NCBI GenBank assembly: GCA_976226885.1
Contig: OZ320314.1
Location: forward strand, 56,730,001-56,794,000
From: Iphione sp. A-MEVVRFRX5
Lineage: Eukaryota
Direction: 5' to 3'
DNA length: 64,000 nt
The notes under the pieces: generated by a model
Database searches by the model: none
What the model was told of the DNA's origin: nothing
The model's input: the letters and a program-made list of their open reading frames with translations, nothing else
Position numbers and translations under genes: made by a program
Part shown: piece after piece, positions 16,001-61,882 of the stretch
Position numbering within the stretch: the first letter of the stretch is position 1
Layout of the letters: each line of letters starts with the position of its first letter

Positions 16001-19000
16001 TACTTCACTTTCTCATATACTTTGAAAACAAATATAGGTGCCTCACCATGTTCTCAATGGATATAATGTCTATACATTTACATAATCATGAGTCACATGA
16101 CAAAATAGCCTAACGTCATTGGCTATGAAAAAGTTTGATTGACAGATATCATGACCATAAAACATGTCATCTTGTCACGCAGTGATGTGTCAATTGTCCA
16201 ATATTTATGAGTTTGAGGATGGTAATCTGCATATTTTCTTCACTGAGACCCATAAGCAGTCTAGGAAGGGTAGGTGTACTTCCAAGCTTAAGTTGCTGCC
16301 TTTTGCAGTGCCACCAAGTGTTTGTGTTGTCAGATGTTTCATGGAGTACAGGAGAAACTCGCTTTGCGACCACCACTTGGGTCGGCCCAAAATGGTCGTA
16401 ATTCTGAATATGGTCGCAAAGTGATTGTGGAGGGGGTCTGGGCTTGAAATCATATCCCTTTCTCTCTCTCTCTTTATTAACATATGAAACATCCAAAAAG
16501 TGCTGAATTTGATGACTTTAGGTCCAAAAAGTGCTGAATTTGATGACTAAAAGTCCAAAAAGTGCTGAATTTGATGACTTTAAGTCCAAAAAGTGCTGAA
16601 TTTGATGACTAAAAGTGACCCAAAGAGGTGAGAGACCATCAGAGACGTCCTCCCTGACACCCTGCGACCACTCCAGGCTGACCCTCCAGGGTGAGAGACC
16701 ATCAAAGACGTCGCCCTGACACCCTGCGACCACTCCAGGCTGACCCTCCAGGGTGAGAGACCATCAAAGACGTCACAGTTCACGCCCGCGACCACTCCTG
16801 CTACCCCCTCCAAGGTGTGGGAACCACGGTCGCCCACCCCCGGCCAACCCCCTCCAGGGTGAGAGACCATCACCCCGGTCGCAAAGTGATAGTAAAATAT
16901 ACAGAAAACGACCCAAAGATGAGTGGTCGGACGCTGAATATGGTCGGAAAGCAATATGGTCGCAAAGTAAGACACTGTCATATAGAGAATGTACTAAAAA
17001 TAATTCCGTTCCGACCCAAAATGGTCGCAATAGTTGATTTGGTCACAAAGTGAGGAGGTCGCAAAGCGAGTTTCTCCTGTACTTTACTAGGACATCATCT
17101 TCCATAGCCAAGTAAAGGGATGACACTTTGTTTATCTCTTTTACTGATTGTCATAAGTGTGTATCCACTTCAAACTTGGCTAGGTGGACTAAGGAGGTAA
17201 TGGCGTTGTCTGATATTCTTTCTCTAAGCTGGCAAAGATGGATATGTGGCTGCTGGAGAGTATGAAGAGGGGCATGTGGAGTCATGTAAATACTTTCAAG
17301 CTTTTCTACTTGAAAGAGAATTCAGGTTGATGATCAGCAATAGGCTGTTCACTCAACCTATGAAATTTTAAGCTTTTAAGTCTCAGGCAGACACCTGGTG
17401 TCCACTTCTCGTACTAAAGTTAGTAGAATACATGACCTTGCAAGTGAAATATTGTCATGACTTTGTACCAGGGTGTGGACATAAGTGTCTAGCTGCTGTC
17501 CTCTTTTTCCCTTTGGATACTTAGTGTTCCTTCATCCTCAGGTTTTTCATACACCCTATTTCAGGGTTTTTGACTTTGAAAAGTGAGGTGTGGGGGGGGG
17601 GGGGGTCTGACCACAGTAGCACCACCTGTACTATTCTCAGCTAATACTGGTACAAAGTCAAGGTCACACTTCACTGTAAGTTTGTGGAACCCACTAATTT
17701 TCAATTTGAATACTATAGGACAGTATAAAGGAGTAGCTGGTTTATATATTTGTTTATTGATATGACGAGGCTGAAAACTTAAACAATTAGCTAAATGCTA
17801 CTTGATCAGTGAAGCAAGTGCTTCCAAGAACTGTTGAATAATGTTCTCCCCAATGATGTCAGAATGGTTTTGTACCCTTGGTAATTTTAAACATCCTTAT
17901 ATGGATAAGTTTCCAGTTTATTCATATTTGTCAAAATGTGTAAATTTTGATTTTGTGTTTTTTACAGGTGGATGACTTGAGTGTCAGCGCCGTTTTGCAA
18001 TGATTTACCTATATATGTGCTTGGGTAGATGAAGTGGGGGAAGGATTTCTTGGTAAATCAACAATTTTTGGATAAGGCAAGAGGGAAAGTTTATATTAAT
18101 TTTCTAATCATTCCAGCCAAATGGGCCCAGTGATGAGGAAGACGAGGAGGAGGGAGAAGGTGAAGCAGAGGAAGAGGACACCACCGTATACCAGTATGTA
18201 CCTCCAGTCTCCAAACCATGGATATCACAAGGCTCTGAGGTGGAAATAGAGGAGGAATCAATCCTTGAGCGGAGAAAACGGGTGAGAGAAAAATGCCCTT
18301 GTTTGTGGCCTGCTAAAATCATTAGATTGCGTAGAGAAAATATGTTTTAGAAATAGACATACTGTGTCTTTAGCTTCGCGTCCTTTTTTAAAATATGTGC
18401 TTCCAAAAGGTCAGAAGAAATAATTCAGTTGAAGAGGGTGCCACCGCATTTCAGTAGGATTGAGAATGAAGCTAAAATACTTCTTCAATTTCGTACAACA
18501 ATGTGCCTATCACAGTATCGTTACGATGCTTTTAGTACATGTATAGGATTATGTAGATGTCTGTTTCGAGAGCAATCACCAGAATCAAAAACATTTATTG
18601 CCATCATACATTTTTTGTTGTTCTTTCATCTGCGAATGCTCTTAAAATGAAAACTTACAGGAAAAATGGGTGAGTTGTTGATGTCAAAAGCTGATGAGCA
18701 CAGATGCGCTGAGTGATATATACTGAATATAAAACAACGAGTATCAGTCTATGCTTTTGACTATATCAGTCGTATGGCATGCAGACTAGTGTTCTCGTCA
18801 TTCCATATAGTAGCAGAGCATATATCATTGCAGTTGCAGACAGTTTTCAGTTTGCCTAACCTCATGGATTTGGCAAATACACCGCAGTGTGTCTACGTTT
18901 TCACTTTTGTTCACACGTGCAACAAATTTATAGAAGAAAATTATTCCCAATATTTATCTAAAAGACTTTACATATATACATACCAATGATGTATTTCACA

Positions 19001-22000: not shown

Positions 22001-25000
22001 AAAAAACAGTTGTAATTTGGAGCAGTTACCAACAACGACTTCTAAGTCTGTAACTTTAGTTTTGCTGTTGTACAGTAGGTGTCTACCTGAGATACATCTG
22101 CAGGTGGCACCACAAATAGACAGCCCATTGAGTATCAACTTTTGCTCAGCAGTCTTCACGACCAGATGCATTAAGTGTTTCTTCTACTACCTTGCTGATC
22201 AGATATAGATACCTTTCAGTTGTTTTGATTGTTTCATTTTATTTATTCTTGACATCCTTTAAGGTTATATATCTGACTTTTTGAGATGTCCCGATAGAGC
22301 CTCACAGTGCTTGTTGAGAGTATGGGGGTAGGAAGCTCTTTTACTGTCCCAAAGCATTAGAAATCCTCCACCAGCAGGAGAAGCATATCTAACAAGGCTA
22401 GAAAGTCAGAAACTTCAAATGACGTTGGAGATTCCAAGTGTTTGTCTGACTGTATGAATGGCAAGAGTGTATGCATCAATGTACAGTGGAGTCTCTATTA
22501 CCGACCACTACTTGGGACCAAGCTCAAGTGGTTGTATTGGTAAATTTGGTCGTAAATAGATCACAATTACTATAGAAAATTTGGTTTTTTGTCCCATCTC
22601 AGTTGGTCTCAAATAGAGAATGGTCGGTAATCGATGTGGTCGGTAATAGAGACTCCACTGTACTGACTGTCGGCTGCCAGCATTGCTCATTATCTTAAGT
22701 ATTTCTGTTGGTTTGCTTTGTCCTGCCTGTGACCAGTTTGGTGAACTTGAATATAGTAACCAATGTGTCGATCACTGGTACTACATGATGAGGAAAATCA
22801 TGAATTTTAGTACCAGGGCAGGACACAATGTGTCTACATGAGATGCAGTTTCGGTGGGGCCACCACAGTCAGCCATCTTGAATCTCACTTTCGGTTCAGC
22901 AGTCACTCTGTTCAGACCTGTGATTCTCACCTGAGTTTAAATCTCCTTTATTATCTTATTTTCCTATACTATCTCTTTACTATCTCATTGGATTACTGGT
23001 TACTAAGAGATTTACTCTTAGATCTTCATCATAGCAAGTGTAGCACTGATCGGAGCTTGAGGTCAGAGGGTGCCAAGAGGTCGCACACTGCTTCTGACCT
23101 CATGACCTCCTCCATGAGTGCCTCTAGCCACTTGCTGCAATTAATGGATCACTGAAAGTTAAAGTAATGGGTACCGCGGACATCACTTTTACTAATTATG
23201 ATGTTATAATGAGAATCGACCAATCAAATCACTGAAAATTTGGACCATGTCACAATTTAGTAAAGTGATGCCCACGGTACCTGTTACTTCAATGTTCAGT
23301 GATCTGCTAATGTGCTAGGGGCTCTGAACTCGGAGCCAGGGTAATTGTTTCAATTTCCTTGGTAGCAAGTTTAGAGGGCCCCAAGCAACAAGTGTCACAC
23401 GCGACCTAGGTAGCAGGATCAGAGGGCATGGGGGTCAATATTCAACCTTCTTCTGATGCTTAACCAGTCAAGTGTGACCTTGCTACTGGGGTCAAAGAGC
23501 ACCGGGGTCTGTGTTTGACCTCTTCTGGTGCCAAGCAACGGTCCTTGAGTGTGACCTTGCTACCAGGGTCAGAGGGTGCTGGTATTGATATTCAGCCTCC
23601 TAACATTGACCTTAGTAGATATGTATCGACTATGCAGGGTGGCATGGCACCTGTTGGTGCACTAACATCATTCTCAGCCAGCTTGCTGGATCCAATGCAT
23701 ACACATTCAGTTGTTGGTTCAGCCTATATTCCTGCCTCTGATCCCCTACTTTCATTCGGGATGACTTAGGTCAGTTCAGTTGGTTTGATGCATTCACCTG
23801 CTGCTATGACTTTGACCTCCAGGACCCTGTGGTTTCATCACAAGATTTGGCTGTTTTAAGAAGAGAGGCAGGCTTTGGTTACAGCCTTCCATGATCCAGG
23901 TGTGTTGAATGTGGAGGTGGATTATGCATTTTGCTGCTTCCAAGATAACTCGGAGTAGGCAGTTAATCCTTCCATCCTTCAGGCAGTGGTGGATGCATGG
24001 GGATCTCCAGGTGTAGACCTTTTTGCCTCGAGGCTTAATTTCAAGGTGTTGGTGTATGGGAGTTTGCATCCTGTTACAGGGGCATGGTTTTTGGATGCTT
24101 TTTCTCACAATTGATCTGATTTTCACCTGTCTTATATATGCCTTCCTTTTTCTTTGATTCCTAGGTGCATTACGAAGTTGGTTCAGGATTGGCCTTGGTC
24201 TGCTCTGCTTCTCGTACTAGCCTGGCCTCATAGCATATGGTACAGCAGGTTGCTGCAGTTTGCTCGGTATCCTTCTCTTGTATTTTGCCAGATTCAACAC
24301 TCTGGACCATCTCAGTCAGCCATCAAATCTAGGGCCTATAAAAATTATGGCCCTTTTTTGTTAGATGCAGTTCTTAAGGGGAATGATTTGACTGCCACCA
24401 CTCAAGCAGTAATATTATGCTAGTGGTATCCTAAGACCAGATAGGTCTATGATACTTACCTTAAAAAGTGGAATACCTTGTGCTATAAAAAGGATTGAGA
24501 TCCTTTACATCATACCCTTAAGCAGGCTATGCATTTTCTAATGGTGTTGTATAATAGAGGCATCAGGTATAGTGCCTTGAACATGGTAAGGAGTGTGTCA
24601 TTGGCAGTACTCCCAATGTTTGATGGATTTGCCTTTGGTAAGCACCCAGACGTAGTCAGGTTGCTTACTGCATTTTTCAATATAAGGCCTCTGGTTGCTT
24701 GTATCGACTATACCTGGGATCTCTCTAAGGCTCTTGATTTTTTGCGACTTTGAGAACTTTTGTCATCTTTGTCACTTAAGAAGTTAACTCTTAAGTATAA
24801 TATGCTTTTGTTGCTTGCCACTAATGGTAGGATGCAAACGGATTGCAATATTCAATTGTCTTACATTCATCAGATTGGTGATGGTAATTTGCAGATTGTT
24901 TTCACCAAAACCTTGAAGCAATCAAGGAAGGGCAGGCGTGCTTCTAAGTTGAAGCTTTTGCCTTTCACTGCTAAGCTGGAAGTCTGTATGGTTAGGTGTC

Positions 25001-27832
25001 TTAAGGAATATATTGCCAGGACATATACACTTCAAGCTAACCAAACAGATGATTCTTTGTTCATCTCTTTTACAGACTGCTGTAAGTCTGGGTCAACTGC
25101 TACTTTGGCAAGGTGGACTAAAAATGTCATGGCGTTGTCTGTTATAAACATGCAGGTATTCTCTGCATATTCCATGAGATCCGCTTCTTCACCGAAGTTG
25201 GTGAAGATGGGGATGCCTTTGCCTAAAATTATGAAGAGGGACATGTGGAGTCATGCCAGTATTTCAAGTTGTTTCACTTGAAGGGTATTCAGGTTGATGT
25301 ACAGCAATAGACTGTGCAGTCGACCTTTGAGGCTTCAGGCTTTGAAGGCCCAGGTAAACACATTGTGTCCTATCCTAGTACTAAAGTTAGTGGGTTACAT
25401 GAACTTACTAGTGAAATGTGACCTTGACTTTGCACCAGGATGAGAACACAGGTATCTAGCTGCCCACCTCTCCCTCCCCTTGTGGGCATGTTAGTTTTCC
25501 TCATCCTTATAGGTTTCTCTTTCTTTCTATTGCTGTGGAGTTCATGACTACTTTGAAAAGGTGAGATTCAAGATAGCTGACTGTGGTGGAGCCACCTGAA
25601 CTGCATCTCAGCTAGAGGTCAGGGAGGTTGTCCTTGGATACTTCAGTGCAACCTGCCTCAGAGGTCTCAGTGACCTCATTAAAGGGATTATGTCAATTGG
25701 CTAGGAGGGCTGAGGTCCTTCTGGGCTAGTTAGAGCCATTACCCCAGTGACCTCATTAGCTGTTGCACTGGATGCTTTGAGGTCTTAAGGTGGGATTCGA
25801 CCTGGTTCTATTCAGAACAGTCACGTCAATCAACCTGCAGCCTGAGCCTTGGGGTTGGTTTGACCTGGTTATAATCAGATTCATCAGTTCGATTAACCTG
25901 CAGCTCTTCCATTGGGGTCGATTTATGTTACAGATGGCTATGCTCACACTTCATCATTGGTGGATGATTAAAATTTTCTGAGTGTTCACGCTTCAACTTA
26001 GGGGTGTGATTTGGCCGATTGTCTTTGGGCAATTTGGATAGCATTCCAAACTTAATCTCAGAGGTAAGAGTGCTATCTGGAGCATATCTGGAATGAAGCC
26101 ATAGGTTGTTGAACCATTCCATCTTACATAGCACCTCTAACACTGCTGCACATTTGTGCATGTCTGTAGCGTTTCTTTGCAAGACATTTGATATGCCTGT
26201 GGTGTATTGGACTTTTACTGGATTAGTACATGATGACCCAATTAATACATGCATGGTCCTATCTTCTGCACCTGCAGCAGTGGCTAAAGCACACAATCAT
26301 GATTTTGTTGGAACTTTTGTGACATTAACAAGTTTCCTTGCTAAGTCGCAGGAGCAGTCCACACAGCATGCAGCACAAGCAGCTGCACAAGCCATATGTT
26401 CCCATGAGGAACTTGTGAGGTTGCAGCAGCAAATGCATGAGCAGCTGCTGCAGTGATTCTTACTAGATGTGTGGCGTAGTATTGATTTCTTTGGTCAGAA
26501 TATGGCCCAGGGTATAGTATGTTGATTGATCAGGATAACGAGAGTAAAGAAGCCAATGATGGTGTGGTTTCCCAAGCCTTAGCAGCCTTGTGGGAGCCAG
26601 AACCTGGCTCTCTTGCTGTACTGATAGACCAAATTGATGCTGACAATGATGTTGGGTCACTTCTCAATAAGAACATGATCCCTTTAGCCAGGAAGCTTCA
26701 TCTCTACCCTTCAAACATTGAACGTTTACAAGTTTGTAGGCTGAATGAGGTCCTTTTTGCAAACCTGTTAAAGGAGCTATGAGAGGGGGAGTGTGTCCTC
26801 CAGAAGGTCAGAGAGGGGGAGTGTGTCCTCCAGAAGGTCAAAAAGGTCCTTATGTCTGAAGTCATCATGTCCTGTAAGGTGATTGAACTGATCATTCCCT
26901 ATGTGGAGGAAGTCCAGTAGACAGCGATTGTGCAACAGGCTGTGGTGGACTCCGTGGTGTTGTGGGGCTCCACTTTTCAAGGACTGATTAGTGATTAGTG
27001 TTGGACGACTGCCTGTCCCTATGACAACCCATATGTCATGGCAGGTTTCTGCATTCAAACCTCCATATAGTTCATGGCCACACCACTTACCAAAGGTGTC
27101 AGCCCCGTTTTATAATTATTTCCCTTTTTAAGTCCATTTGTTTTTTTTTTAAATCATAGTAAGTCTTGCTTGGTGTTTTCCCAGTCTGTTGTATTTTTTA
27201 AGTCTCAGGTAGACACCTAATGTACAAAAATTGAACTAGAATTAGTAAATTACCTATGAACTTACCAGTGAAATGTGATCTTGACTTTTTGATACTATTG
27301 TACAATGGTCTCTTCCTGCCCTTCTCTTCCTTCCCTTGTGTGTGTGTTTTGGGGTTGTTTTTTGTCCCCCGCCTCATAGAGGGGGGGAAATTAGGAATGC
27401 TGTTTGCTGGTGTCCCAACCGTCTGTCACACTCTTGTGGGTCTTATAAGTCTTAAACCCTTCACTCAAAAAAAACTGATTTTAATATATGATATTGGTAT
27501 ATATGGCCCCATGGTACTGGGTAATTTTGGTAGTAATTCAAATATTTTGAAGGTGAAATTATGCTAATTTTACTCTTTTTCTAACACACCTACAAACATA
27601 CATACCCGTTTCAGGGGTTCCTAGGTCTGACAATGCACATACATACACACTCAGTGCTCAGTCATGCAGAACCGAGGGCTTGTAGCAGTCTGGTGCTCAG
27701 TCAGGCAGAACCGAGGGGGCTGTGCCCGGTCAGGCAGAACCGAGAGTTGTAAACCTGAAAGACTTAAACAAGTCTAGCCAACTACCCCCAAAACAAGCTG
27801 CCAATCAAGGTGGTTGTAAAGAGAGAGAGACA

Positions 27833-42800: not shown

Positions 42801-44814
42801 ACGAATAAATATTTGTAAATTTGACATAAACGCGTACACACATAATATAGAAAAAGGAAAAGCCTAATCAGTTCGTTTTCACCTTTATCTTTAACATTCT
42901 GCCTCGTGGGAATTTCGCCCGATGCAGCATCAATCTGTCTTTCTTTTTTCGGCGGCATGCCTCGCACGTTTTAATTTGCGTTTTTTGAAAATTAATTTGA
43001 TTTAATTCAATTCCTTTCTTTAATCCAGTCGTGCTATCGCCCATTAAAAGCAGTTTTGATACAGAATTGGTGCGAATTTAATATGAAAACTTGACGCAGT
43101 GCATGATGATTGGAAATATAAAACTGTCTGGATAGATTTGTTGACAGATCGCCGATATTATAAAGACATTTGTCAGATACAATTTCTTAAGGGCAGTCGC
43201 AGTTCGGCCCGAAAAAAACAACCGCATCCACTCCGTGAGTCTCTGGAAATAGCAGGTCAAGCCTTAATGAAGTTAGGACATGTTTCTCTGTCCTTGCAGC
43301 CAAGCAGCACCTGCTGGCCGTCGGCGATGCCCTAGGCACTCTTCACATCATGGAGATCCCTTGGAGCCTGAGGCAACCCACCACCAATGAGGTAGGTAGC
43401 TGCCTCGCCTCCATCAACACTTAACCATTCAATCACAATAACCTTTAAATCATAATTCTTCACAAACAGACCACTACGATGGCTATGTGGTTTCTATTCA
43501 AGAATCATTGTATATCTCTTGTTGCTGCAATTTGCCTACTTGTTGGGACGTAAGGAGTATATAGTAAATTCACGTACTCAGTATTTGACTAGCTTTTGTC
43601 ACCATTTGGAAGCAGATGTTCTTCTTGGATCCTGCATACGCTGAATTGTTAGTTCGTAAAGCGAGGAGGCTTGTCTTGTCTGCTTTCATGAAAGTGGTTT
43701 TATTTTGAAAAAAAAATTCCCCCCAAAAATACAAATTAGGAGCCAGTTTATCACTTCGTTTCTGCTCCCATGTTACGAGCCGCATCAGTGACTCGACATT
43801 CAGTACTCTTATAACTGTTGAGACGTTGCCTGTCAAGGAACCATTCATACGTTGATTACTGTATATTTCAAAGCTGAACGGCGTGAGCAACTACTTTGAA
43901 CGTGAAGTAAAGCGTCGGGGATTCGTCGAGTCCCGATGGGACTTCCGTGAGAAAGAGAAGATGGAATTAGAAGCGGAGGCTAAAAGGAAAGCTGGTGTAA
44001 GTAGGATAGATTTGGCAGATGGAAGGGGACGCCGATGAGTCAGTATTCACTGATGACTTAGACCCTGTTCCATTAAGATAGACTGATAATCATGTTATTT
44101 TCTGAACCATGTTCCATTGCTAATCATATCTCGCCTACAATCCCATCAATTGCTGACTTGTCAACTTTGTTCTGTCGTGTTTTCGGAGAAGATAAATGGT
44201 TTAGAATAAAGAGGCTTCGTCCTCCACAAGCTCCAAGAAAGCTATCCCTTCAAAGCTGCACCCAGCAGCTTACCTTCGTTTCAACTGTTCTTTAACCTTT
44301 ATCTATACCCCGTCAGTTCGTATATTCCCACGGGAATCATTATTTTAAAATGTCAGCAGTGCCATTCACACAGCGTTAGGTCCCACTTAGTTTCATGGGA
44401 GAGTGGTCTATACACAGAACAGCATAAATAGTGAAACTTGCTGTCTATGATCAACTGAACTCGCAGATACTGACCATTATATACCACTGTTTCCAATGAG
44501 ACTCTGCGAGAAGTATAGTAGACGAAGAATGAGTAGGGTCTGGTCACAATTCACAATGACCCAGTCTTTATCAGTTTACTCGTCATGGAATACAGGGCAA
44601 ACACACTCACTTAGTTACCCTTTACAAAATGCAGAATCATCCTCATCTCTTTTGATTGACTTTGCAGATCGCTCCCAATGTTACTCTGTCAGAGGAGGAG
44701 GTTGAACAGCGCATGCGCATGGAATATGCTGCCTTTGTTGAAGAAGAGAATGCGTTCCTGCGATCTCTTGGACTTAAGGAGGAGGAAAAGGAAGAGCTTC
44801 CTGTGGTGGACTAA
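10010..44814 (+). CDS. DNAI3: DNAI3/WDR63 axonemal dynein intermediate chain (WD40), 967 aa, 20 coding exons
   Basis: Exons: 10010-10069, 10338-10560, 10767-11095, 18117-18281, 19870-20028, 20964-21121, 21700-21890, 28211-28335, 28659-28832, 30367-30489, 31026-31099, 33330-33477, 33843-33927, 34886-35013, 39621-39684, 40039-40169, 41601-41805, 43300-43391, 43874-43996, 44668-44814. All GT-AG and phase-consistent (2904 nt). Recognisable WDR63 segments include NRAAVSDFHP, QQNEIMNVFYDDW, EYQSFTDL, LILIWSFADPIHPQLLLEAPDD, GGCVNGQVVLWDIS, FYVGTEDGE, QRSPFFKDI, GTLHIMEIPWSL and NYFEREV. Confidence 0.95.
13798..14338 (+). pseudogene. DIRS reverse transcriptase remnant
   Basis: Two frameshifted ORFs with LFLRPKPNGSLRMLLDLSKLNK-like and YLAFVWQGKVYQYDVLPFGLSSAPRIF segments. 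The catalytic YxDD appears degraded to YFDS near 14266. Confidence 0.85.
15893..16191. mobile_element. 299 bp MITE with AATT target duplication, inserted in the DIRS-A recombinase
   Basis: AATT|GACACATC...GATGTGTC|AATT. Removing it restores ATCCAATTGTCC, collinear with DIRS-B (ATTCAATTGTCT). A 4 bp AWWT TSD is compatible with Sola-type elements. A 2 bp AT TSD reading is also possible. Confidence 0.75.
16349..17079. mobile_element. Tc1/mariner-type MITE, copy 2, nested in the DIRS-A recombinase
   Basis: TA|CAGGAGAAACTCGCTTTGCGACC...GGTCGCAAAGCGAGTTTCTCCTG|TA. Same family as 994-1489. Flanks rejoin as YR sequence collinear with DIRS-B. Confidence 0.88.
16490..16616. repeat. 31 bp tandem repeat, ~4 copies, inside MITE copy 2
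   Basis: GTCCAAAAAGTGCTGAATTTGATGACT(TTAA/AAAA) head-to-tail with no spacers. A related motif occurs in reverse orientation near 52690-52750. Confidence 0.9.
20204..20388. mobile_element. Small pogo/Tigger-like MITE
   Basis: TA|CAGTCATCCCTC...GAAGGGACCACTG|TA, with imperfect TIRs. Confidence 0.6.
22484..22660. mobile_element. Small pogo/Tigger-like MITE
   Basis: Perfect 24 bp TIR CAGTGGAGTCTCTATTACCGACCA, flanked by TA on both sides. Confidence 0.88.
22809..25618 (+). mobile_element. DIRS1-like element B, internal deletion lacking RT/RNase H (DNAI3 intron 7)
   Basis: Left ITR 22809-22890 is inverted at 25561-25618. ICR at ~25350-25470. Methyltransferase-like GVDLFASRLN...LDAFSH at ~24010-24110. 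YR remnants at 24529-25281 (YSALNMVRS, LATNGRMQT, AYSMRSAS with the HxxR His changed to Tyr). Confidence 0.88.
24760..25281 (+). pseudogene. DIRS tyrosine recombinase remnant
   Basis: 173 aa ORF with LKQSRKG, CMVRCLKEYI, LFISF, TLARWTKNVM and YSMRSAS. Typical DIRS YR layout, with the catalytic His and C-terminal Tyr not intact. Confidence 0.85.
25614..28158 (+). mobile_element. DIRS1-like element C, 5'-truncated, gag plus 3' end only, fused to B
   Basis: 25620-27060 aligns by eye with the DIRS-A gag region (e.g. GCTAAGTCGCAGGA.CAGTCCACACAGC at ~12880 and ~26340). An ICR-like block follows at ~27200-27295 and a right-end block at ~28095-28158. No RT or YR seen. Confidence 0.75.
27358..27963 (+). 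mobile_element. HINE/Helentron-associated element, copy 2, nested in DIRS-C
   Basis: Highly similar to 8193-8792 along its whole length, with a longer (CA)n tract. Confidence 0.8.
31796..31931. other. Assembly gap (136 N)
   Basis: Run of N within DNAI3 intron 11. Exon phase on the two sides is compatible (CA|C = His), so no coding exon need be missing. Confidence 1.
35410..36584. mobile_element. CACTA/EnSpm(CMC)-like non-autonomous element nested in DIRS-D
   Basis: CT|CCCAGTCA...TGACTGGG|CT gives short TIRs and a 2 bp TSD. Arrays of GTGAGCTCAC-type motifs sit at both ends (~50 bp x4-5 at 35424-35644; degenerate at 36430-36572). Confidence 0.72.
35644..35790. repeat. ~147 bp near-perfect palindrome
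   Basis: GTTACGTTTCCG...GCTATAGCTCGTTGGAAAGCTC-ttgat-GAGCTTTCCAACGAGCTATAGC...CGGAAACGTAAC, with few mismatches. Confidence 0.92.
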
Positions 44815-46888: not shown

Positions 46889-49800
46889 TCATATTGTAGT
46901 CACCCTGGAGGTCACCTTCCGGGATGTGCGGGGTGTCAGATCCGACGGGCTTGCAGGTATGCCATGAACGTTGTGGGGCCCTTTAGAAGCTGCTGCTGTT
47001 GTGGTTGCTGCTGCTGCTGTTTGTGGCGGTTGCCCTTTGTAAGGCTTAGAGGCCGTCGCTGACGCTGACGATGCTCGCTGTCCAACGAGGGACGACACTG
47101 GGGCAGCTTTTGGTCTTAACACGCTCTTTGGGGCAACGGGGGCTTTTGCTGCTGATTGAGACTTCTGCATCACTCCCTGTTTCTGTTGCTTTTGCTGCTG
47201 ATCCTGCAGCCGAATATGTTTCAACTGCTGACCTGATTTTTGCTGTTGAGACTGCTGTTGTCTGGCAACGCTCTGACTCGAGCTGCCTTGCCGATCCGTC
47301 AGAGTAGTGGTCCCCGACCGGCGGCCCGCTACCACTCCGTTGGCTGCAGCAGTTCCCGAGACGCTTTTGGCACTAGTTAAATCCTGCGTTGCACGTACAC
47401 CCTTCGCAGTCGTCGTCGGCGCGTTCTTTACCGTTGCTCCACCCGAAGCCTTGCCTTCTGCCACAGGCAGGCGGCTTGGTTGAGCGGTCCTGCTAGGTGT
47501 GTAGCTACTGGTGGTTGCAGTCGTGGAGCTAGTAGATATTGGGGTTGTCTGTTTGACGGCTGGGCTGGAAGCACCCACCGGCCGGCCCCTGACTGACGCC
47601 AACTTAACTTGCCGTGACAGGCCTGTCGCATTAGCGTCATGTCCGACGGATGTCTTCCTGGCTGCCGTATCTATCACCATCCCACCGCCGCTGCCGCCCG
47701 CCCCGACTCGAGAAATTGCCTGCCGAGTCCGGGCGAGCCCTCCGTATACCGCCTCTTGCTTGCCCTTGGCTGTAGGTGCCACGGCTGAGCCGGACACGTC
47801 AGAGAGGATGGTATTGCCTAATGTACTCTCTGAAACGCATTTGTGCGAATCCGGTAAAAAGGTGGTTTCTCTCCTCGACATTTGAATATAGGCTGTCGCC
47901 GGCACCGGGCTCGGGATAGCAGAGACAGGTTTGATAGCTTTGACTTTTTGCACGTCCTCGCCAGCCCTCTTGTGGGTTTGCCCTGTGTTTGAGAGTTGAG
48001 TATCAGAACTGTCCTCTGGCCGCTGCTTGACGTCGCACCTTCTTCCGCTTTCGGCCTGTTCCCTATAGGTTTGTATATCACAGAGCTCGTCTTCCAGTAA
48101 TCCATGGAGTCTGTCACTGGAGGGCCTATCAAGAGGCAGGTCGCTACTTGCATCCGGTGTAAAACATGTCTCATCGACAAGATGCTCGTTGGAACCTTCG
48201 TTAGCAAGCTTTTCCAGCTCGGTGAAGGTCTCACTGGCAAATTCATCACTGAGTACTTCGTCGCCTTCCTCCTCCTCCTCTTCCAAAGCTTCCCCGTCAC
48301 CGTTCAGCTCGTCCTCAAAGTCTGTGTGGATCCTCTCGTGTGAGTCATACACATGATCATCTGCAAGGAGTGAAATTTCATCACATGATGTGTATTCGCC
48401 TGAGTTTTCTAAGTCGTCCTCGTTTGTATCAAGAAAGCCAGACTCTGCTTTATCTGATACCCTTAAGAATGAACCATTGGCCGACTTTGGCTTAGATGGC
48501 GATTGTGTGCCGCCATCATCAAAGCTTGCACTGTTTACAGTGATAGAAACATCTGACAGAGGAGGAGGTACATTCCCGCCATAGTTCGTTGTGTTACTCA
48601 GTCGGCTGGCACTTTGATTAGCTAGTTGACCTTTTTCGGTGACCCGCTGGAGCTGACCATCCATACTCCCGGTTTCCTTAGTTGGCAGGCTCGATTCGTC
48701 TCTCATGGCTCCCTTTTGCCCTGTGGTCGGCTTTTCCTTCTGAGGGGTCACTGCGCGTGTGCAGCCCATGTTGGCCCCAGTTATGCTGATTTTACCTTGA
48801 CTTTTTGAGTTGAGATATGCACTGCTTTGTTCGGGTCGAGTATCATCCGTTGGCGGTTGCCCCATGATATTAGCTCTATGTGAATGATGTTCTTTATTTG
48901 GAGTGCCTTTTACTGTAGGACTGGCTGCCCCGAGGACTTTATCATCACATCGTGTCTTTATTGCAGCAGCCGATCTGAGATATGCAGCATTGAGTTCTGG
49001 TCCACTTTCTTCCAAGTAAGCCTTATCGTCACAGCTGCTTTGGCGTGAGCCCAAAGCTCTGGTGATCGAGCAGTTATTGCTGTCGCCTGCCCCGCTCGTG
49101 GCTGGAAGCAATTCGACCCGCTTAGATCCTATCAGGTAAACTGCCTTCGTTGTGGGACAAGGAGGCGGCGGTGGTGGCGGCGGCGGCGGCGGCGACGGTG
49201 GCGTCGAAGGGTCGTGGGACACTTTATTGATGTTCTTGATATACTCCTGCGGCCGTAGTATCAAGCCTGTCGGAGCATGCTTCATATGAGACGCCGTACC
49301 TAACATTGTTGTTGGTTGCGCCGGATTGCTTCCAATGGCCTTGGCATCCAAGGAAGACAGAGAGCCTTCGGTGCTCGAGTGGAGTGGTGGGGAGTATTGC
49401 TTGAGGCAGAGTGTATCGTACTGAACCCCGACTATCGGTGCCATCTGTCCACCACCTTCTGTCGATGTCCCTTGGAAACCACACTCACTTAGGGTGCCGC
49501 TTGAGTCAGGTCTGGCAAATAGGAAAACATCGGAAGCCTTGCAGTTAGGGATTGAAGGACTGCTGCTACAACGTATACCCTGTACAAGACCTCCCTCTGC
49601 TTCGTCAGTACTTAATGACAGCAACTGACTACTGACACTGTCAATGTCAGTCGGCTTGCCCCTGGAGTTCAGAAACGGGAGCGAGCGACTGTAGCTGGCC
49701 TCGAGCAGCTCGTATATCATACGGCTATGGGAGAAAGGCGTGGCCATCTCCTTGTAAGCAGCATCGATGTCAGTGGGCTTACTACTCCTGAACATTCCTG

Positions 49801-50842
49801 AGCAGCTCATAGGCAATTTCAGGAACGTTTTGTTCTCCAATTTCCACTTTAGGTCGCAAGCATTGAAGTTCTGTTTCTTGTGTGTAGATTCTAATGAGGT
49901 CGGGTCAGAATCGAAGCTATCGATTGTCATGCCTGGAGGTATGTTGTACGAATCTAAACCGTATTGTTGACTTGTGTTAAAATCATCGTCAACAGTACAT
50001 TTGATGGTTACCGGTGTCGAATGCGATGTTATTACTGCAGGACATGGGTTGACTCTTTCTACCCTAGATTCCGGAGGATTGTCAATGCATGGACTCCCAA
50101 TGGAAAGAAGATTACTATCTGAATGAGTATCAGCAGGAGAAGAGGTCAGTTCGCTAAGATCCAAGCAGTCGCTCCATCGACTCATCCTGGGTTTGATACC
50201 CCAGCTCCTCAGCATAGCACCGTTGTCCTGGGGCTCCATCCCTGGCTCCGAGGAAGCATCGTTCACCTCACGACCATCCTCCTCGTCTAAGATGTTAAAC
50301 TCGTTCCTCTCGCCCTTGTCATAGCGCGAGGTGAGCAATGGCTGCTCAACACTACGTTTCCGCCGGGAGAAGCGACCCGAACCCACCCTCAGGCGCTGAC
50401 GCTCCCTCAGGCTGTCGTCACTTAGTTCGCTGTCGGCCGTTGTGCCATTCTCCCCCAAGTGACTGCTCTTGTCGCTGTCTGTGATACTTTCCCGCTCTTC
50501 GTCGATTGTTTCATATCGATTTCGTACTCGCGATGATGGCCGATTTACCCTGAGACCGCCGCCGCCACCTGCACTACCGTTTCCGCCGTTACCCCCGTTT
50601 GCGCCGACGGCCACACCGTCGGCACTCGGCATCCGGAAGGTGACGACGACCGTCTCCCCGTCAGGCAACGACATCCTTTTGGTGGCGCCCCCGTCGCTAA
50701 GTAGACTTGGGATGTCTATAGTAAGTTCGTCGACATCATCGTCGAGCCGCGTCGCTTCATCGGTCCTGTGCACCCCACCGGCCTCCTCTGCTCCCTGCTG
50801 GTGCTCGGTTTCCAGTTTCAGGCTATGCAACCTCGTCATCAC
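46889..50842 (-). CDS. Exon 2 of an uncharacterised single-pass membrane protein: 1317 aa low-complexity cytoplasmic tail
   Basis: 3954 nt stop-free ORF starting immediately after a good acceptor (gttctgttttcag|GTG), phase 0. S/T/G/P/Q-rich with poly-Pro, acidic and poly-Gln tracts. No folded domain recognised. Confidence 0.85.
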   Translation of the reverse strand: MMTRLHSLKLETEHQQGAEEAGGVHRTDEATRLDDDVDELTIDIPSLLSDGGATKRMSLPDGETVVVTFRMPSADGVAVGANGGNGGNGSAGGGGGLRVNRPSSRVRNRYETIDEERESITDSDKSSHLGENGTTADSELSDDSLRERQRLRVGSGRFSRRKRSVEQPLLTSRYDKGERNEFNILDEEDGREVNDASSEPGMEPQDNGAMLRSWGIKPRMSRWSDCLDLSELTSSPADTHSDSNLLSIGSPCIDNPPESRVERVNPCPAVITSHSTPVTIKCTVDDDFNTSQQYGLDSYNIPPGMTIDSFDSDPTSLESTHKKQNFNACDLKWKLENKTFLKLPMSCSGMFRSSKPTDIDAAYKEMATPFSHSRMIYELLEASYSRSLPFLNSRGKPTDIDSVSSQLLSLSTDEAEGGLVQGIRCSSSPSIPNCKASDVFLFARPDSSGTLSECGFQGTSTEGGGQMAPIVGVQYDTLCLKQYSPPLHSSTEGSLSSLDAKAIGSNPAQPTTMLGTASHMKHAPTGLILRPQEYIKNINKVSHDPSTPPSPPPPPPPPPPPCPTTKAVYLIGSKRVELLPATSGAGDSNNCSITRALGSRQSSCDDKAYLEESGPELNAAYLRSAAAIKTRCDDKVLGAASPTVKGTPNKEHHSHRANIMGQPPTDDTRPEQSSAYLNSKSQGKISITGANMGCTRAVTPQKEKPTTGQKGAMRDESSLPTKETGSMDGQLQRVTEKGQLANQSASRLSNTTNYGGNVPPPLSDVSITVNSASFDDGGTQSPSKPKSANGSFLRVSDKAESGFLDTNEDDLENSGEYTSCDEISLLADDHVYDSHERIHTDFEDELNGDGEALEEEEEEGDEVLSDEFASETFTELEKLANEGSNEHLVDETCFTPDASSDLPLDRPSSDRLHGLLEDELCDIQTYREQAESGRRCDVKQRPEDSSDTQLSNTGQTHKRAGEDVQKVKAIKPVSAIPSPVPATAYIQMSRRETTFLPDSHKCVSESTLGNTILSDVSGSAVAPTAKGKQEAVYGGLARTRQAISRVGAGGSGGGMVIDTAARKTSVGHDANATGLSRQVKLASVRGRPVGASSPAVKQTTPISTSSTTATTSSYTPSRTAQPSRLPVAEGKASGGATVKNAPTTTAKGVRATQDLTSAKSVSGTAAANGVVAGRRSGTTTLTDRQGSSSQSVARQQQSQQQKSGQQLKHIRLQDQQQKQQKQGVMQKSQSAAKAPVAPKSVLRPKAAPVSSLVGQRASSASATASKPYKGQPPQTAAAATTTAAASKGPHNVHGIPASPSDLTPRTSRKVTSRVTTI

Positions 50843-53800
50843 CTGAAAACAGAACGAGACATAGGTTTACATAGGCCTGTCTGAAGAACACCAGCGGTAC
50901 CTGTATTTGGTTATTCAATTATACTGGTCTGAACAGGTTACCAGCTGTGTATCTGCAATACAATATAGCTATGAATAGGTTATATAAGAGATTTCGTTAA
51001 ACCACAATAGGTACTTTTATTTAGGAACTACCAAAAACGTTCATTTGTTTTTCTTCAAACTATCGTGCCCTACAATAAAAAATACCATTTCTCTTTGTGG
51101 CCCTACCGAAACTCATATATTCTAATCTGAAATTACCTGATAATTATTATTCTCTGCTTTCTTTTGCACTTATATGACAGTAAGATCATAACAGTTTCCA
51201 CATCTTTACATACACACAGATATACATGAATAGGCGCGCGCATACACTAGAATTTCTTGAGAAGATATACTTTGAGGGTTCTTTGTAATAATCCATCCCC
51301 GGTCTGCATGAAGTTAAATTAGGTGCTGCTGTAGGGTTACACTAGTAGATGTTTGTATTCTAATACTACGCACTGCTATGCGTTTGCTGTGTGGCCCACC
51401 TTTGATACTTGATATTTATAATTTGGGATTTGCACCGGCATCCGCATGAAGGTATTCTGGCAATGCATTATGTGCATGGAATCTGAACTACTTCCATAAC
51501 AATGTGAGGGAAAGGGAAACCTGCTTTGGAAGTATGGGTCAACCTTTCCCGGTCGAAAGGATCCATATCATCTGTATACCTGTATATGGATCATGATATC
51601 TGGCTTTTTCCTGAGATATTTGATATAAGGTTCTGCTTGATTTGTTGACGTGGTCACCTAGCCGCCTTTAAAAAAACATTCATGAATTATTTTTTTCTTG
51701 GAAAACAGGCCACATGACCAAACATGATTTCGTCCGTTTTCTTGAAATCGTTTTAGTCGGAGAAGATAACCGACCACCTGTCATGTGCCTTTTGTAAATA
51801 AAAAAATTACCAGAACATTTTAGAATGGAATATTTCCTGCTTTGATTAAAGGTTTTGAAAGGTATGCATATCTTGCAACTGAGATGGTGACCAAAGTCAT
51901 CTCGATCAAAATTGGCTTATATGAGAACATGAGCAGCATAGCAATTTATGTAATGAATATGAATTGCATCAATATTATAAGCACTTTCATTTATGTACAA
52001 AACTCCTGGTAAAGGAAACCTTACCATATGATGATATAAATCATTATGATATAAATTGGGCTAAACTTGTCAGTAATTTATATGTAATTACCATGGTAAC
52101 ATCAACATTCTCCACTCATGCAGCAATGATGCACATAATGCAAAAAAAGGTGATCTAACATGTCACATCACAGCCATTTTCATATATCAAAACCCTCTTG
52201 AAATAAAAGCATAGTACAGTCGATTGTCTATTTGCGACCATGTTTATGGACCAAAACCTTAAATATGAGCATATGAACTCGGAATGCAATATTTGCCTCT
52301 GTTAACCTATGTAACAAAATACCATGATAACAAATAAAATACCATCCAAACTGGCCTGCAAACACATGACTTAGGGTCATATTCATAGTATTTCATTATC
52401 ACAAGGTAACCAGAGGTATGAGCATGAGCAAACCAGCCTACAACCACACGTCTTATAGTTATTTCTAATGGATTTGAGTATCACTTTACAGGCAGAGATG
52501 TGAGTACGACACTTCAGAATTCCTGCAATCGCACATCTTAGGGTCGTTTCTGTTGGATTTGAGTATTTTCCACCAATCAGCTTGCACTACTTCCAGACAT
52601 TGTCTGAATAAACAGTAAACATAAGTACTGTAATGGGTTCGTGCTACTGCTGGCAATTCGTCCATTAGTAGGCCAGAGGTGACAGTTTTCAGACTTTTAC
52701 TCTCAAATTCACTACTTTTAGGACTTTTTGTCATCAAATTCACTGCTTTCACATTCACTCGCCAAATTCGCCACTTTTCACTATCACCAAAACCAATAAT
52801 GCAATCACTTCAGCTCGGAATGGAAGGGTGGACGCAGACAAGCATTCGACTGTATATCGCTTCCTGAATATTTGTAAATGGATATTTCTCTCAAAATTAA
52901 TGTCTTTTATTTTCTCATTGGAATTTTGTGAGCTTACACCGATTTTATGTAATTTCAGAAGATAATTCATAATATTCTTTTGTGCATTATTGTCTTGCTG
53001 ACGGATGAAATAAAGTTGCACAGCTGTAGAGGGAGCAATAGGCCTAATTCGAAATGTTTACTATGGTGTAATGCAACAGTCATCAGCACAAAGTTAGCAA
53101 TACTAAATCATGTGTGATAGTCCTGTACACTGAAAAAAAATCCCATTTCTGTCGACCGGAAAATAATTTAGAGTCTTGCTGCCTTTTGTTCAGGATGCTA
53201 GCAGAAACTTTTATCATTCCGAGTTGACTGGTTTAATAATGTGACACCATAGGACCATACGAATACATGTATATTAATAACTCTATACGGTTATGCCTTA
53301 AAATTAAGTGGAAATAATCTTGATACTTTGAAAGTTAAGTTGAGATTTTAAAAAAAAGAAATCACCAGGAAAACGTCTGATGAGAGTTACGGATAAAATA
53401 CTGAGGAAATAGTAAATATTTCAAGTTCTGTCAAGGAACAACGCCGCTAATTGGCAAAACCTCTCTGGAAATCTATTTCTAGAGCAGAATCTCAACAGAA
53501 TTTCTCAGTTGGAGCATAAATCCGGTAGGAAATTAAATTCCACATAACACCTAAAAACCTGCTAATTCTGAAACTGACATAAGAAGCTTAATGACCAGTG
53601 TTTCCATGGTTACATGTTTAAATGCCATAGTTGGAACTGATTTGGTAGTGGTGAGGTATTGATCTTAGCGTCACTATTTCTAGTCACCATGTTATCATTT
53701 ATTCATATAAAATACTTGCAAAATATTCCGTCATGGGAATAAAACAATCAAGAATAGATAGAATATAAATGTAATTAAGAATAAAATTGACTATACACTT

Positions 53801-54181
53801 AGAAGATGGGAAACTATGAAAAGTCTACCAAATAATTATTTTGGTTCGCAAATCAAATCATGTAGGTCTTTGAGGGGGAAAAGGTATTCGTATTGATTTT
53901 TTCCTGCATGTAAAAGTAAACACGGAACTAAACATCCATTTGGCCTACATAGTAGCTCGACGGATAGACAAAATCCTACCGTGAATGATACTATACTGCT
54001 TCAGGTTTATACGTGCCTATAATTTTCATCTCTAACTACATGTAAATGTATATGTACAAACGGGGTACAAACACAAAAGCAATATTGGCACGGGATCGAC
54101 CAAAGATTGGCCCTAAGCTGTTCATGTAGGCCTACTATATTTTACTATATGTCGACATCGGTTGACACCTGCTTAGCCTAC

Positions 54182-54568
54182 CTGCTGCATTCGATAGTAA
54201 CGTGCCCACTTCCAAGGGTCTCTGTGAATGGCTGCGTAGTCATCATACACTTTTTCTTCATCAATGTCCGCCCGTTCCTGCTTGAGGTACATCGTCAGCG
54301 CGGCGACAATGCCGATCGCATAGAAAGCGAGCACAACGACGATGTAGAGAAGAGCATGCCTGTCTCCGCCGCCAGACGTCACCACTGCAGCGTCCACCGC
54401 TGCCATGGCAACTGTGACGTTAACTGTCACCTGTGGGTCGATCTTCTCGACTCCGACCACGGCGGCCGCTGCCATTCCCGTCCCTCCTGGTGCGGCCGAA
54501 TCGTTCAACCCGACGCCCGAGGCGTTCGCGATGGTCACATCCTCCCAGGGTGTTGTCAAAGAGCTCAT
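54182..54568 (-). CDS. Exon 1 of the same gene: glycosylated N-terminus plus KCNE-like TM segment (129 aa)
   Basis: ATG at 54568. Sequons at N15, N22 and N50. Hydrophobic ALLYIVVVLAFYAIGIVAALTMYL followed by KQERADIDEEKVYDDY. Ends MQQ|gtaggc in phase 0, matching the acceptor at 50843. The joined protein is ~1446 aa. Confidence 0.78.
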
Positions 54569-59630: not shown

Positions 59631-59862
59631 TGCTAGGAGGGAGAGAGACAGATAGACAGACAGACAGAGAGACAGAGAGACACCCAAATAGAGAGACAGA
59701 AAGAGATAGAAGGCCGTGCTTTAACCCCTTAAGGACCACCCATAAGCTTATTGTACACAAATGGACGATAATATTGAAGGTAGGAGTTAAATGAATAATA
59801 TTTTATGCCTATATTTCATTTTTTACACAAAGCAAGGTCATGTGGGAAGCCATCTCTTGAAA

Positions 59863-61882
59863 ATAAACCTAGTAAAGGGAAAGACCCGCAAAGACCCTCT
59901 CCACCTGGATCCAGCAACAAGAGCGGAAGAACTTGCCACCCAATTCACCCAAAGGACCTGCTCTGACAACCTTCCCAGGGAACACAGAGTAACATTAGCA
60001 AGACTCGAGCCCCACAGGAAGAAAGTCATCCACCAAGCGATTTCCCACCCAAGCCCGGAAGAACTGGACAGTGCAATCACAATCCATGAGGAGAGGGCAA
60101 CCCTCAAAGGTGCCTTCTTTAAAGCTCCTGGCTCTGACCACATACCCAAAGCAGCCTTCGCCAAATTGAAACTGGAAAACCACGAAATAGTGTGGCAGAC
60201 ACTCAATGAGGTATTCCAAACTTCAACTGTCCCCCCTTCCTGGAAACTGGGAGACATCGTCCCCATTCCCAAAGCTGGAGGAGGACAATGCCCCATTACC
60301 TTGCTTCTAGCAATGGGGAAGATACTGGAAAAAATAGTACTTGGAAGGGTCAGACATGCCATGCAAAAAGCAGGTCATAAAACCCCAGAGCACATATACG
60401 GATTCACCCCAGGAAGATCCACTGCCCATTGTGCCACCACCCTGGTTAGCCAAATACTAGCAGCCAAGCACTAATGCATAGCAGTCTTCCTGGACCTCGA
60501 AAAAGCCACCAATCAATCCCCCCCAATGTAACCCCCTCTCGCCTTCTTCTCTCTTCAGGTCAGTCCAGCTACAGATGATACTGAGAACTGCCTGGCAACA
60601 ACAACATCATCTGGCTGGCAGGCCCCTCGCTAGTGACCAGTGAGTGGCCCAATCCAGATCATCACTAAGGTCCATCTCTGGACCCCTCTGAAAGTTCACC
60701 TCTTCTTTCATTCTATCACTCTACTGAGTTGGACCAAGTAGCACTCCCTACCCATGGCCCCTTAAGACTCACACCCACTGCTCCTCCCCTCTCTCCTCCT
60801 CCCGCTCTACTATGCTCCTCTCCTTTTAGTGACAGTGGCATGGAGCAATCCATGGCTCCACACTGTCCCGGCCCGTTACACTGACCAGGTGTCCACCGCA
60901 AACGACTACCTACACTTCCTCGGGAAGGGCATGGTCGGCTTGCAGCAGTGGTGCACATCCAGTGGGATGTGTGGCTCAGGGCTCTGACCCTTGCAGGCAC
61001 ACCTATACAGTCAGACGCAGTAGCGTGGGGCCCACCCCATGGCAGTACACTGCTTGGAAACGAGATCCTGAGGGGTGTCCACCACCAACGGCTGCCTACC
61101 CTTCCTCCGGAAAGAGCATGGCTGGCCTGCGGCTAAGGCACACATAATTGGGATGCACAGACCCTACCTTGTGTGGCTCGGGCTCAAGGCCCTTGCAGGC
61201 ACACCCCCTGGATCAGTCAGAAGTAGTGGCATGGGGCCTGCCCCATGGTGGATCACTGCTCGGTGTCCACTGCCAAAGGTTACCCACCTTTCCTCGGAAA
61301 GGCCATGGCTGGCCTGCGGCTACAGCGCACACAACAGGGGCATGGAGTCCCACTGTGTGTGGCTCAGGCTTCAGGCCCTGCAGTGCACCTATCAGTTAGG
61401 AACAGTGGCGTGGGATGCAAACCCTTGGCGGTACACTACCTGGCAAGATAGTAGTCTAGGTTTTCAAAGCCTCACAAGAGGTGACAACGCACATAAGTGG
61501 AGCATTAAGCTCCCACCTTGTGCAGCTTGGACTTGTCCCATGGTGCCGTACTACCACAACCAGGTCCATCCTTCCCCCCTACTGGTTGTCCCGCACTTGG
61601 ACTGGTTACTTCGGCAGCTGGTGCAGCTTGGTGTAACAACCACAGCAGCTCACCAGGTCAGGTGCAGACACTTGGGAGAACAACCCCATGATAGTGTTCT
61701 ACATGGCCTGCTAAACACCGTCCCCCAGACCCAGCAATCCTCACTGCTGCTCCATGGATCCAAATGGGAGAGTGACACAACTTACTACACATGGAGTCAG
61801 GAGAACCTCCAACTCAGAATTGGGCTGCCTAATCGGTGAAGCCCTGCAGTCCCCAATACTGCAAACCACAATGATCAATGAT
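59863..61882 (+). mobile_element. 5'-truncated, internally rearranged non-LTR retrotransposon insertion
   Basis: Flanked by a 12 bp direct repeat CATCTCTTGAAA (59851-59862 and 61883-61894). 3' tail is (CAATGAT)2. The RT N-terminal motifs KAPGSDHI, WKLGDIVPIPK, PITLL..MGKILEKIV, YGFTPGRST, then an in-frame stop and AVFLDLEKA, stop abruptly at ~60510. Confidence 0.85.
60920..61450. repeat. Degenerate ~170-190 bp tandem repeat, ~3 copies, inside the LINE insertion
   Basis: Recurring GCATGGCTGGCCTGCGGCTA, TGTGTGGCTC.GG and CCCTTGCAGGCACACC blocks. Confidence 0.75.

Follow-up and report, generated by a model that had tools for sequence, protein, structure and literature searches.

What kind of protein is made when a small membrane module resembling the KCNE potassium-channel subunits stands at the head of a tail of more than a thousand residues? 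The question is raised by a locus of Iphione sp. A-MEVVRFRX5 (GenBank assembly GCA_976226885.1, contig OZ320314.1, positions 56,730,001 to 56,794,000), a stretch of 64,000 nucleotides (nt) that was analyzed as a whole and is called the window hereafter. On its minus strand, two open reading frames (ORFs) of 131 amino acids (aa; 54173..54568) and 1317 aa (46889..50842) had been joined by a first-pass annotation, made from the letters of the window, into a single protein with a KCNE-like transmembrane (TM) segment. Comparison with related genomic loci supports the view that the two ORFs form one real two-exon gene on the minus strand, and the product is a giant-tailed member of an undescribed protostome family, itself probably remotely related to KCNE. 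All features of this gene given below lie on the minus strand.

A large unnamed protostome family

We searched each exon separately. A word search with exon 2 returned three relatives, P0001 and P0002 (~61% identity) and P0003 (38% identity), and the corresponding search with exon 1 returned the three orthologous exons together with P0007, a protein of 226 aa that is encoded by one ORF, carries the same module and ends in T-S-V. Exon 1 was also 49% identical to P0055 over 59 aa (BLASTP, E 5e-19). From the window and four relatives we built a profile of the module, 63 columns wide, and used it to search 1.84 billion protein representatives. This search recovered 238 of them at E ≤ 1e-3 and 90 at the stricter E ≤ 1e-10, so that the family comprises at least 238 cluster representatives. 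Judged by its sequence, the window protein is a member of this large unnamed protostome family: it carries the family module A-L-L-Y-I-V-V-x-L-x-F-Y-S-x-G-I, from which its clade deviates at L81A and S84A. The first-pass annotation had been unable to name an ortholog; the protein now has three giant-tailed orthologues in addition to the wider family.

All named members of the family are annotated as uncharacterized or hypothetical. They come from the annelid Capitella teleta, the nematode Romanomermis, the crayfish Cherax, and the molluscs Lottia, Elysia, Littorina, Babylonia, Nucella, Haliotis, Patella, Gigantopelta, Mizuhopecten, Pecten, and Mya, and no deuterostome was noticed among them. 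The closeness of the module to the Capitella proteins would be in keeping with an annelid source for the window. The TM motif strings of the family were not found in a full-text literature search, and a literature search on KCNE with lophotrochozoan terms yielded nothing relevant. Many members are proteins of 100–350 aa with the module near the N-terminus, and a few mollusc proteins reach 594–743 aa. Of 146 family sequences, 133 have N-glycosylation sequons ahead of the TM segment. The class I PDZ-type end [ST]-x-[VIL], which typically reads [VI]-T-[FNSD]-V, was present in 73 of 152 sequences, many of the others being ORF fragments.

Many ORF fragments of the family from other species (P0042, P0049, P0037, P0041, and P0047) break immediately after ...Y-[DE]-D-Y-A-R, about 17 residues before the position of the splice site in the window, indicating that some lineages have an intron elsewhere in the module. 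In two molluscs, pairs of members lie on one contig under successive locus tags (KAK3781019/KAK3781020 in Elysia crispata and XP_052774740/XP_052774741 in Mya arenaria), which suggests tandem duplicates. About 21 family sequences terminate in [VI]-T-F-V, and the common [KR]-[VI]-T-F-V end, found also in P0104 and its relatives from Cherax quadricarinatus, fits both the class I PDZ pattern and R-V-x-F, the docking pattern of protein phosphatase 1. In the crayfish protein P0104, the module lies at residues 268–361 and is preceded by a long N-terminal part with a weak match to another TM family.

Probable kinship of the membrane module with KCNE

Exon 1 (54182..54568; 129 codons, delimited by the ORF and the donor site) encodes the N-terminal ectodomain, the TM helix, and a juxtamembrane helix. 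A scan for N-x-S/T motifs placed three N-glycosylation sequons at residues 15–17, 22–24, and 50–52 (54413..54526), in the predicted extracellular N-terminus; this N-terminus is not hydrophobic, and no signal peptide is predicted. Hydropathy analysis yielded one hydrophobic segment (peak 19-residue Kyte–Doolittle window from residue 73, mean 2.76). The three sequons, the lack of a signal peptide, and the single TM segment had all been described in the first-pass annotation and are borne out here. The TM string that it quoted and the string DEEKVYDDY are likewise both present, but the second does not follow the first directly, as three residues (ADI) intervene. The TM helix (~residues 72–95; 54284..54355), located by hydropathy, AlphaFold2, and column information, forms the ultra-conserved core of the family. 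The cytoplasmic juxtamembrane region beyond it (54182..54283) is basic and then acidic, and carries Y-x-x-Y, D-P, and R-Y-Y-R, as indicated by conservation within the family. AlphaFold2 modeled a single unbroken helix over residues ~69–116 with a predicted local distance difference test score (pLDDT) above 90. Foldseek returned no match for this helix model, which is expected because the model is a lone helix. On the basis of sequence prediction and the helix model, the window protein is predicted to have the topology of a KCNE, namely one pass with the N-terminus outside, no signal peptide, three sequons, and basic residues after the TM segment.

A profile comparison with the Pfam family of KCNE, ISK_Channel (PF02060; profile length 126 positions, gathering cut-off 22.1 bits), had been suggested in the first-pass annotation, and its outcome was divided: exon 1 of the window was not matched, and ISK_Channel was nevertheless the commonest Pfam family among 147 members of the protein family (34 of 147 at E ≤ 0.01). 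Of 43 members that were scanned individually, 28 matched ISK_Channel from before the TM segment through to the region after it, always at profile positions ~20–85. The scores of the orthologue P0004 (13.2 bits) and of P0007 (16.6 bits) were below the cut-off, and that of P0055 exceeded it (29.5 bits, E 6.9e-7, residues 1–101 on profile positions 1–96). When P0055 was divided into pieces, the TM segment alone gave no match, whereas the N-terminus with the TM segment scored 21.1 bits and the TM segment with the following region 15.4 bits, indicating that the extramembrane flanks carry part of the signal.

The same relationship was obtained in the reverse direction. In a search of 177,635 PDB sequences with a 126-sequence family profile, seven KCNE chains occupied ranks 1–7 (KCNE2, E 0.017; KCNE3, E ~0.03; KCNE1, E 0.6–1.1), and the alignment covered the acidic stretch before the TM segment, the TM segment, and the Y-x-x-Y-I motif. 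A profile of the P0055 subgroup matched KCNE2 with an E-value of 0.0027, aligned via Y-x-Q-Y-I...W-x-x-K-Y. HMMER paired the family Y-x-x-Y-[LMI] with the Y-x-x-Y-I that follows the TM segment in KCNE2 and KCNE3; the D-P of the family follows about 10 residues later and is not at the KCNE D-P site. This agreement in direction, register, and rank suggests that remote homology to KCNE is likelier than convergence, with odds that we put near two in three on these sequence comparisons. The KCNE-like identity first proposed is supported, as remote homology, through the family, by way of P0055 and the PDB ranks, and not through an ISK_Channel match of exon 1 itself. Because the window protein falls short of the Pfam cut-off, we file it as KCNE-like at the superfamily level and not as a canonical KCNE.

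Compared with vertebrate KCNE1–6 and lamprey KCNE0, the protein is alike in its predicted one-pass, N-out topology, its N-terminal N-glycan sequons, and its lack of a signal peptide. The TM segment is in both cases followed by a basic cluster and, in the HMMER alignment, by Y-x-x-Y-[IL], the profiles match in both directions and in one register, and in some members of the family, P0007 among them, a single ORF encodes the protein. KCNE proteins are roughly 100–220 aa in size. The window protein differs from them in its length of 1446 aa, its PDZ-type end, and its score below the Pfam cut-off, and the TM segment of the family varies far less between phyla than, to our knowledge, those of the KCNE paralogues do among themselves. 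A second comparison is offered by the MiRP/KCNE-like KVS-1 subunits MPS-1 to MPS-4 of Caenorhabditis elegans, which are described as nematode-specific (bioRxiv 10.64898/2026.04.28.721385); MPS-1 is a one-pass protein of 256 aa with its TM segment at residues 46–68 and a random-coil cytosolic tail (PMC4210162). Compared by description only, the proportions of MPS-1 match those of the short family members, and the family, too, has a nematode member (Romanomermis); no C. elegans protein appeared in the last word search, in which 8000 candidates were scored.

The vertebrate type III adaptors PAG/Cbp and PRR7 and the PDZ-ended auxiliary subunits Shisa/CKAMP combine a short or small ectodomain and one TM segment with a long disordered tail that bears docking motifs and closes with a PDZ ligand. 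The window protein shares this architecture with them as an analogy only, as no sequence similarity to them was found and Pfam gave nothing for the tail.

The reading that we favor, at a probability of about one half, is that the locus encodes a remote KCNE-superfamily protein that serves as both K+ channel partner and scaffold, with a giant lineage-specific tail. Several points weigh against it. Neither exon gave a Pfam match at E ≤ 10, so that the ISK_Channel cut-off was not reached, and PDB searches with either exon returned nothing meaningful. Only one of the KCNE matches in the family reaches the Pfam cut-off, and those in the PDB search, with E-values of 0.003–1, are marginal. Other TM families were matched as well, at a lower rate (CrgA in 10 of 147 members), which indicates that helix composition contributes to the scores. 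The KCNE link is drawn from profile-to-sequence comparisons, in both directions, among members that are not mutually independent; the channel partner is drawn from analogy with KCNE and MPS-1, and the splice junction 54182|50842 from cross-species comparison. Finally, we know of no vertebrate KCNE with a PDZ ligand or a long tail.

The most serious alternative is that the KCNE likeness is convergent and that the family consists of independent type III one-pass adaptors, in which the helix binds another partner or self-associates and the tail recruits PDZ scaffolds. Such an origin would be in keeping with the weak KCNE matches of most members, with the lack of any such match for the window protein, and with the additional matches to TM-rich Pfam families, EVI2A as well as CrgA. 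A PDZ-type end is, moreover, common in the family and, as far as we know, not a KCNE feature. The published record, too, reports no kcne genes in invertebrates (PMC11659587; bioRxiv 10.64898/2026.04.28.721385). Against convergence stand the recurrence of a single Pfam model, always in one register, among about two thirds of the members, the one member over the cut-off, the TM segment of P0055 that gives no score by itself while both flanks add to it, and the reverse search headed by KCNE2, KCNE3, and KCNE1. We regard convergence as less likely than homology, although it retains a substantial share of the probability.

The giant tail and a possible channel partner

Exon 2 (46889..50842; 1317 codons and a stop), delimited by its ORF and by the orthologues P0001, P0002, and P0003, encodes a tail that is predicted to be cytoplasmic and disordered. 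The disordered tail of ~1300 aa in the first-pass annotation agrees with these predictions: 76% of the 1317 residues are disorder-promoting, no second hydrophobic segment was found (maximum 0.81), and in the AlphaFold2 model of the first 450 aa the pLDDT averaged 39, with no more than a small hairpin at about residues 54–68.

Conservation of the tail among the four species takes the form of short islands in the alignment. The first of these (exon 2 aa 34–76; 50615..50743) comprises an acidic stretch and the small beta-hairpin, and no other section of the first 450 aa reaches a pLDDT of ~70. The second (aa 101–174; 50321..50542) contains an invariant R-Y-E-T-I-D-E-E-R-E-S, which includes a Y-x-x-hydrophobic sorting-type motif, together with an acidic Ser-rich stretch, and the third (aa 348–418; 49589..49801) has two copies of [KR]-P-T-D-[IL]-D flanking S-L-P-F-L. 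An acidic dileucine motif at aa 810–838 (48329..48415) is kept in the three closer species, and there are two further blocks, among them an island at aa 985–1010 (47813..47890). The protein closes with a conserved C-terminal block, ...T-S-R-V-T-T-I, whose last four residues (46892..46903) form a class I PDZ-ligand-type end that reads T-T-I in three species and T-S-V in the fourth. In BLAST comparisons with the tails of other members, no similarity was found except for [KR]PTD[IL]D, which recurs in the tails of two Patella family members. The giant tail is thus an enlargement, specific to this lineage, of a tail that is normally short.

From these features, we infer a channel partner and a scaffold role for the window protein. 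Exon 1 would provide a short N-glycosylated extracellular N-terminus lacking a signal peptide, followed by one TM helix and then a juxtamembrane helix. The TM helix, if it behaves as in KCNE, may lodge inside a conserved multi-pass partner, most plausibly a voltage-gated K+ (Kv) channel. The information content of the TM columns averaged 3.2 of 4.32 bits across 126 family sequences, with all faces of the helix conserved, as would be expected if a conserved protein partner surrounded the helix and not if it faced lipid. The tail, usually of 100–250 aa, has been enlarged to 1317 aa in this lineage and may act as a disordered scaffold through its sorting-type motifs, its repeated [KR]PTD[IL]D, and its PDZ ligand. 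These motifs and the ligand might anchor or traffic the complex.

A variant with a different partner is improbable in our estimation. Here, the protein would be a KCNE homologue that associates with another Kv class than KCNQ, or with another membrane complex, and the tail would be its main functional part. Modulation of several Kv classes has been reported for vertebrate KCNEs (PMC11659587), and C. elegans MPS-1 is reported to work with KVS-1 and not with KCNQ (PMC4210162); the strong conservation of the tail motifs across the four species would also be compatible with a tail of this kind. The present evidence does not discriminate among partners.

If the favored reading of a KCNE-related channel partner and scaffold is extended to the whole family, the protostome proteins could be the missing invertebrate counterpart of KCNE, with an origin in the bilaterian ancestor, an ancestral PDZ tail, and a 1446-aa scaffold in one annelid lineage. 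We advance this broader proposal tentatively, at slightly less than even odds. The family supplies candidate accessory subunits of invertebrate Kv channels in neurobiological model animals (Capitella, Lottia, and scallops), and makes the origin of KCNE directly testable. The giant-tailed member would, if the proposal is true, be unusual in combining a channel helper with a disordered scaffold that is anchored through PDZ binding.

The exon junction and neighboring sequence

The intron between the two exons (50843..54181; 3339 nt) was identified from its splice sites and by orthologue comparison. Its donor is CAG|GTAGGC at 54182|54181, and its acceptor, at 50843|50842, consists of a pyrimidine-rich tract followed by TTTTCAG|GTG. 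The intron is in phase 0 because exon 1 measures 387 nt, and the predicted joined protein has 129 + 1317 = 1446 aa. In the loci of the three orthologues (L001, L002, and L003), an exon 1 homologue that terminates in ...RYYRMQQ lies upstream of exon 2 on the same strand, and the gene-caller ORFs P0001, P0002, and P0003 each begin at the same V-M-T-R-L position; such an arrangement is not due to chance. All four species share the donor CAG|GTA, the acceptor CAG|GT[GA]ATGAC, phase 0, and the same splice codon. The introns measure 3339 (window), 2245, 472, and 399 nt, and a comparison of the four revealed no conserved element and no hidden exon. Canonical sites and four-species conservation thus uphold the phase-0 GT-AG junction (54181..50843) and the length of ~1446 aa originally assigned.

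The single-ORF homologues P0015 and P0018 run unbroken through RYYRMQQ-V-L-x-R-L, the motif that is here split between exons 1 and 2, and the PDZ-type end typical of the family is present only at the terminus of exon 2. Differences between species were also informative: in the TM module of exon 1, the proportion of nonsynonymous differences per site (pN) was 0.02–0.07 against a synonymous proportion (pS) of 0.5–0.86, and in the tail, pN was ~0.34–0.51, with synonymous sites near saturation (pS 0.5–0.86). The combination of near-saturated pS and low pN indicates that both exons are coding and under purifying selection, which is very strong on the module.

That the two ORFs are instead separate genes or remain unspliced, exon 1 alone then yielding a 131-aa protein, is very improbable: the read-through product would be KCNE-sized, but exon order, splice codon, and phase are all kept in four species, continuous homologues cross the junction motif and share conservation from the first codon after the acceptor, the start of the long ORF coincides with the acceptor in 4 of 4 species, with its first Met one codon inside, and the residues past the donor are not conserved between species. 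Within the two-exon gene, retention of the intron would lead to a stop two codons past the donor (54173–54181), and the product, at 131 aa, would be as small as a KCNE. The corresponding stop of the orthologues lies 4–13 codons downstream of the donor.

On the plus strand, two short exons (43856–43948 and 44659–44811), the last of which meets a stop at ~44812, belong to a neighboring gene that converges tail-to-tail on the KCNE-like gene. At the protein level, these exons are 81–89% identical to positions 17531–17689 and 23145–23237 of L001, which indicates that the neighborhood is syntenic. An Rfam scan of the window gave no match. A 173-aa ORF at 24760–25281 (plus strand) had a sub-threshold match to Phage_integrase, a tyrosine recombinase family (E 7.4e-5), and may be the remnant of a tyrosine-recombinase mobile element of the Crypton or DIRS type. 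Farther along the window, a 227-aa ORF at 59791–60474 (plus strand) weakly matched a reverse transcriptase (RVT_1, E 0.0083); it lies in a stretch at 60–62 kb in which the guanine-plus-cytosine content rises to 0.53, and is, to judge from this match, probably a retroelement fragment.

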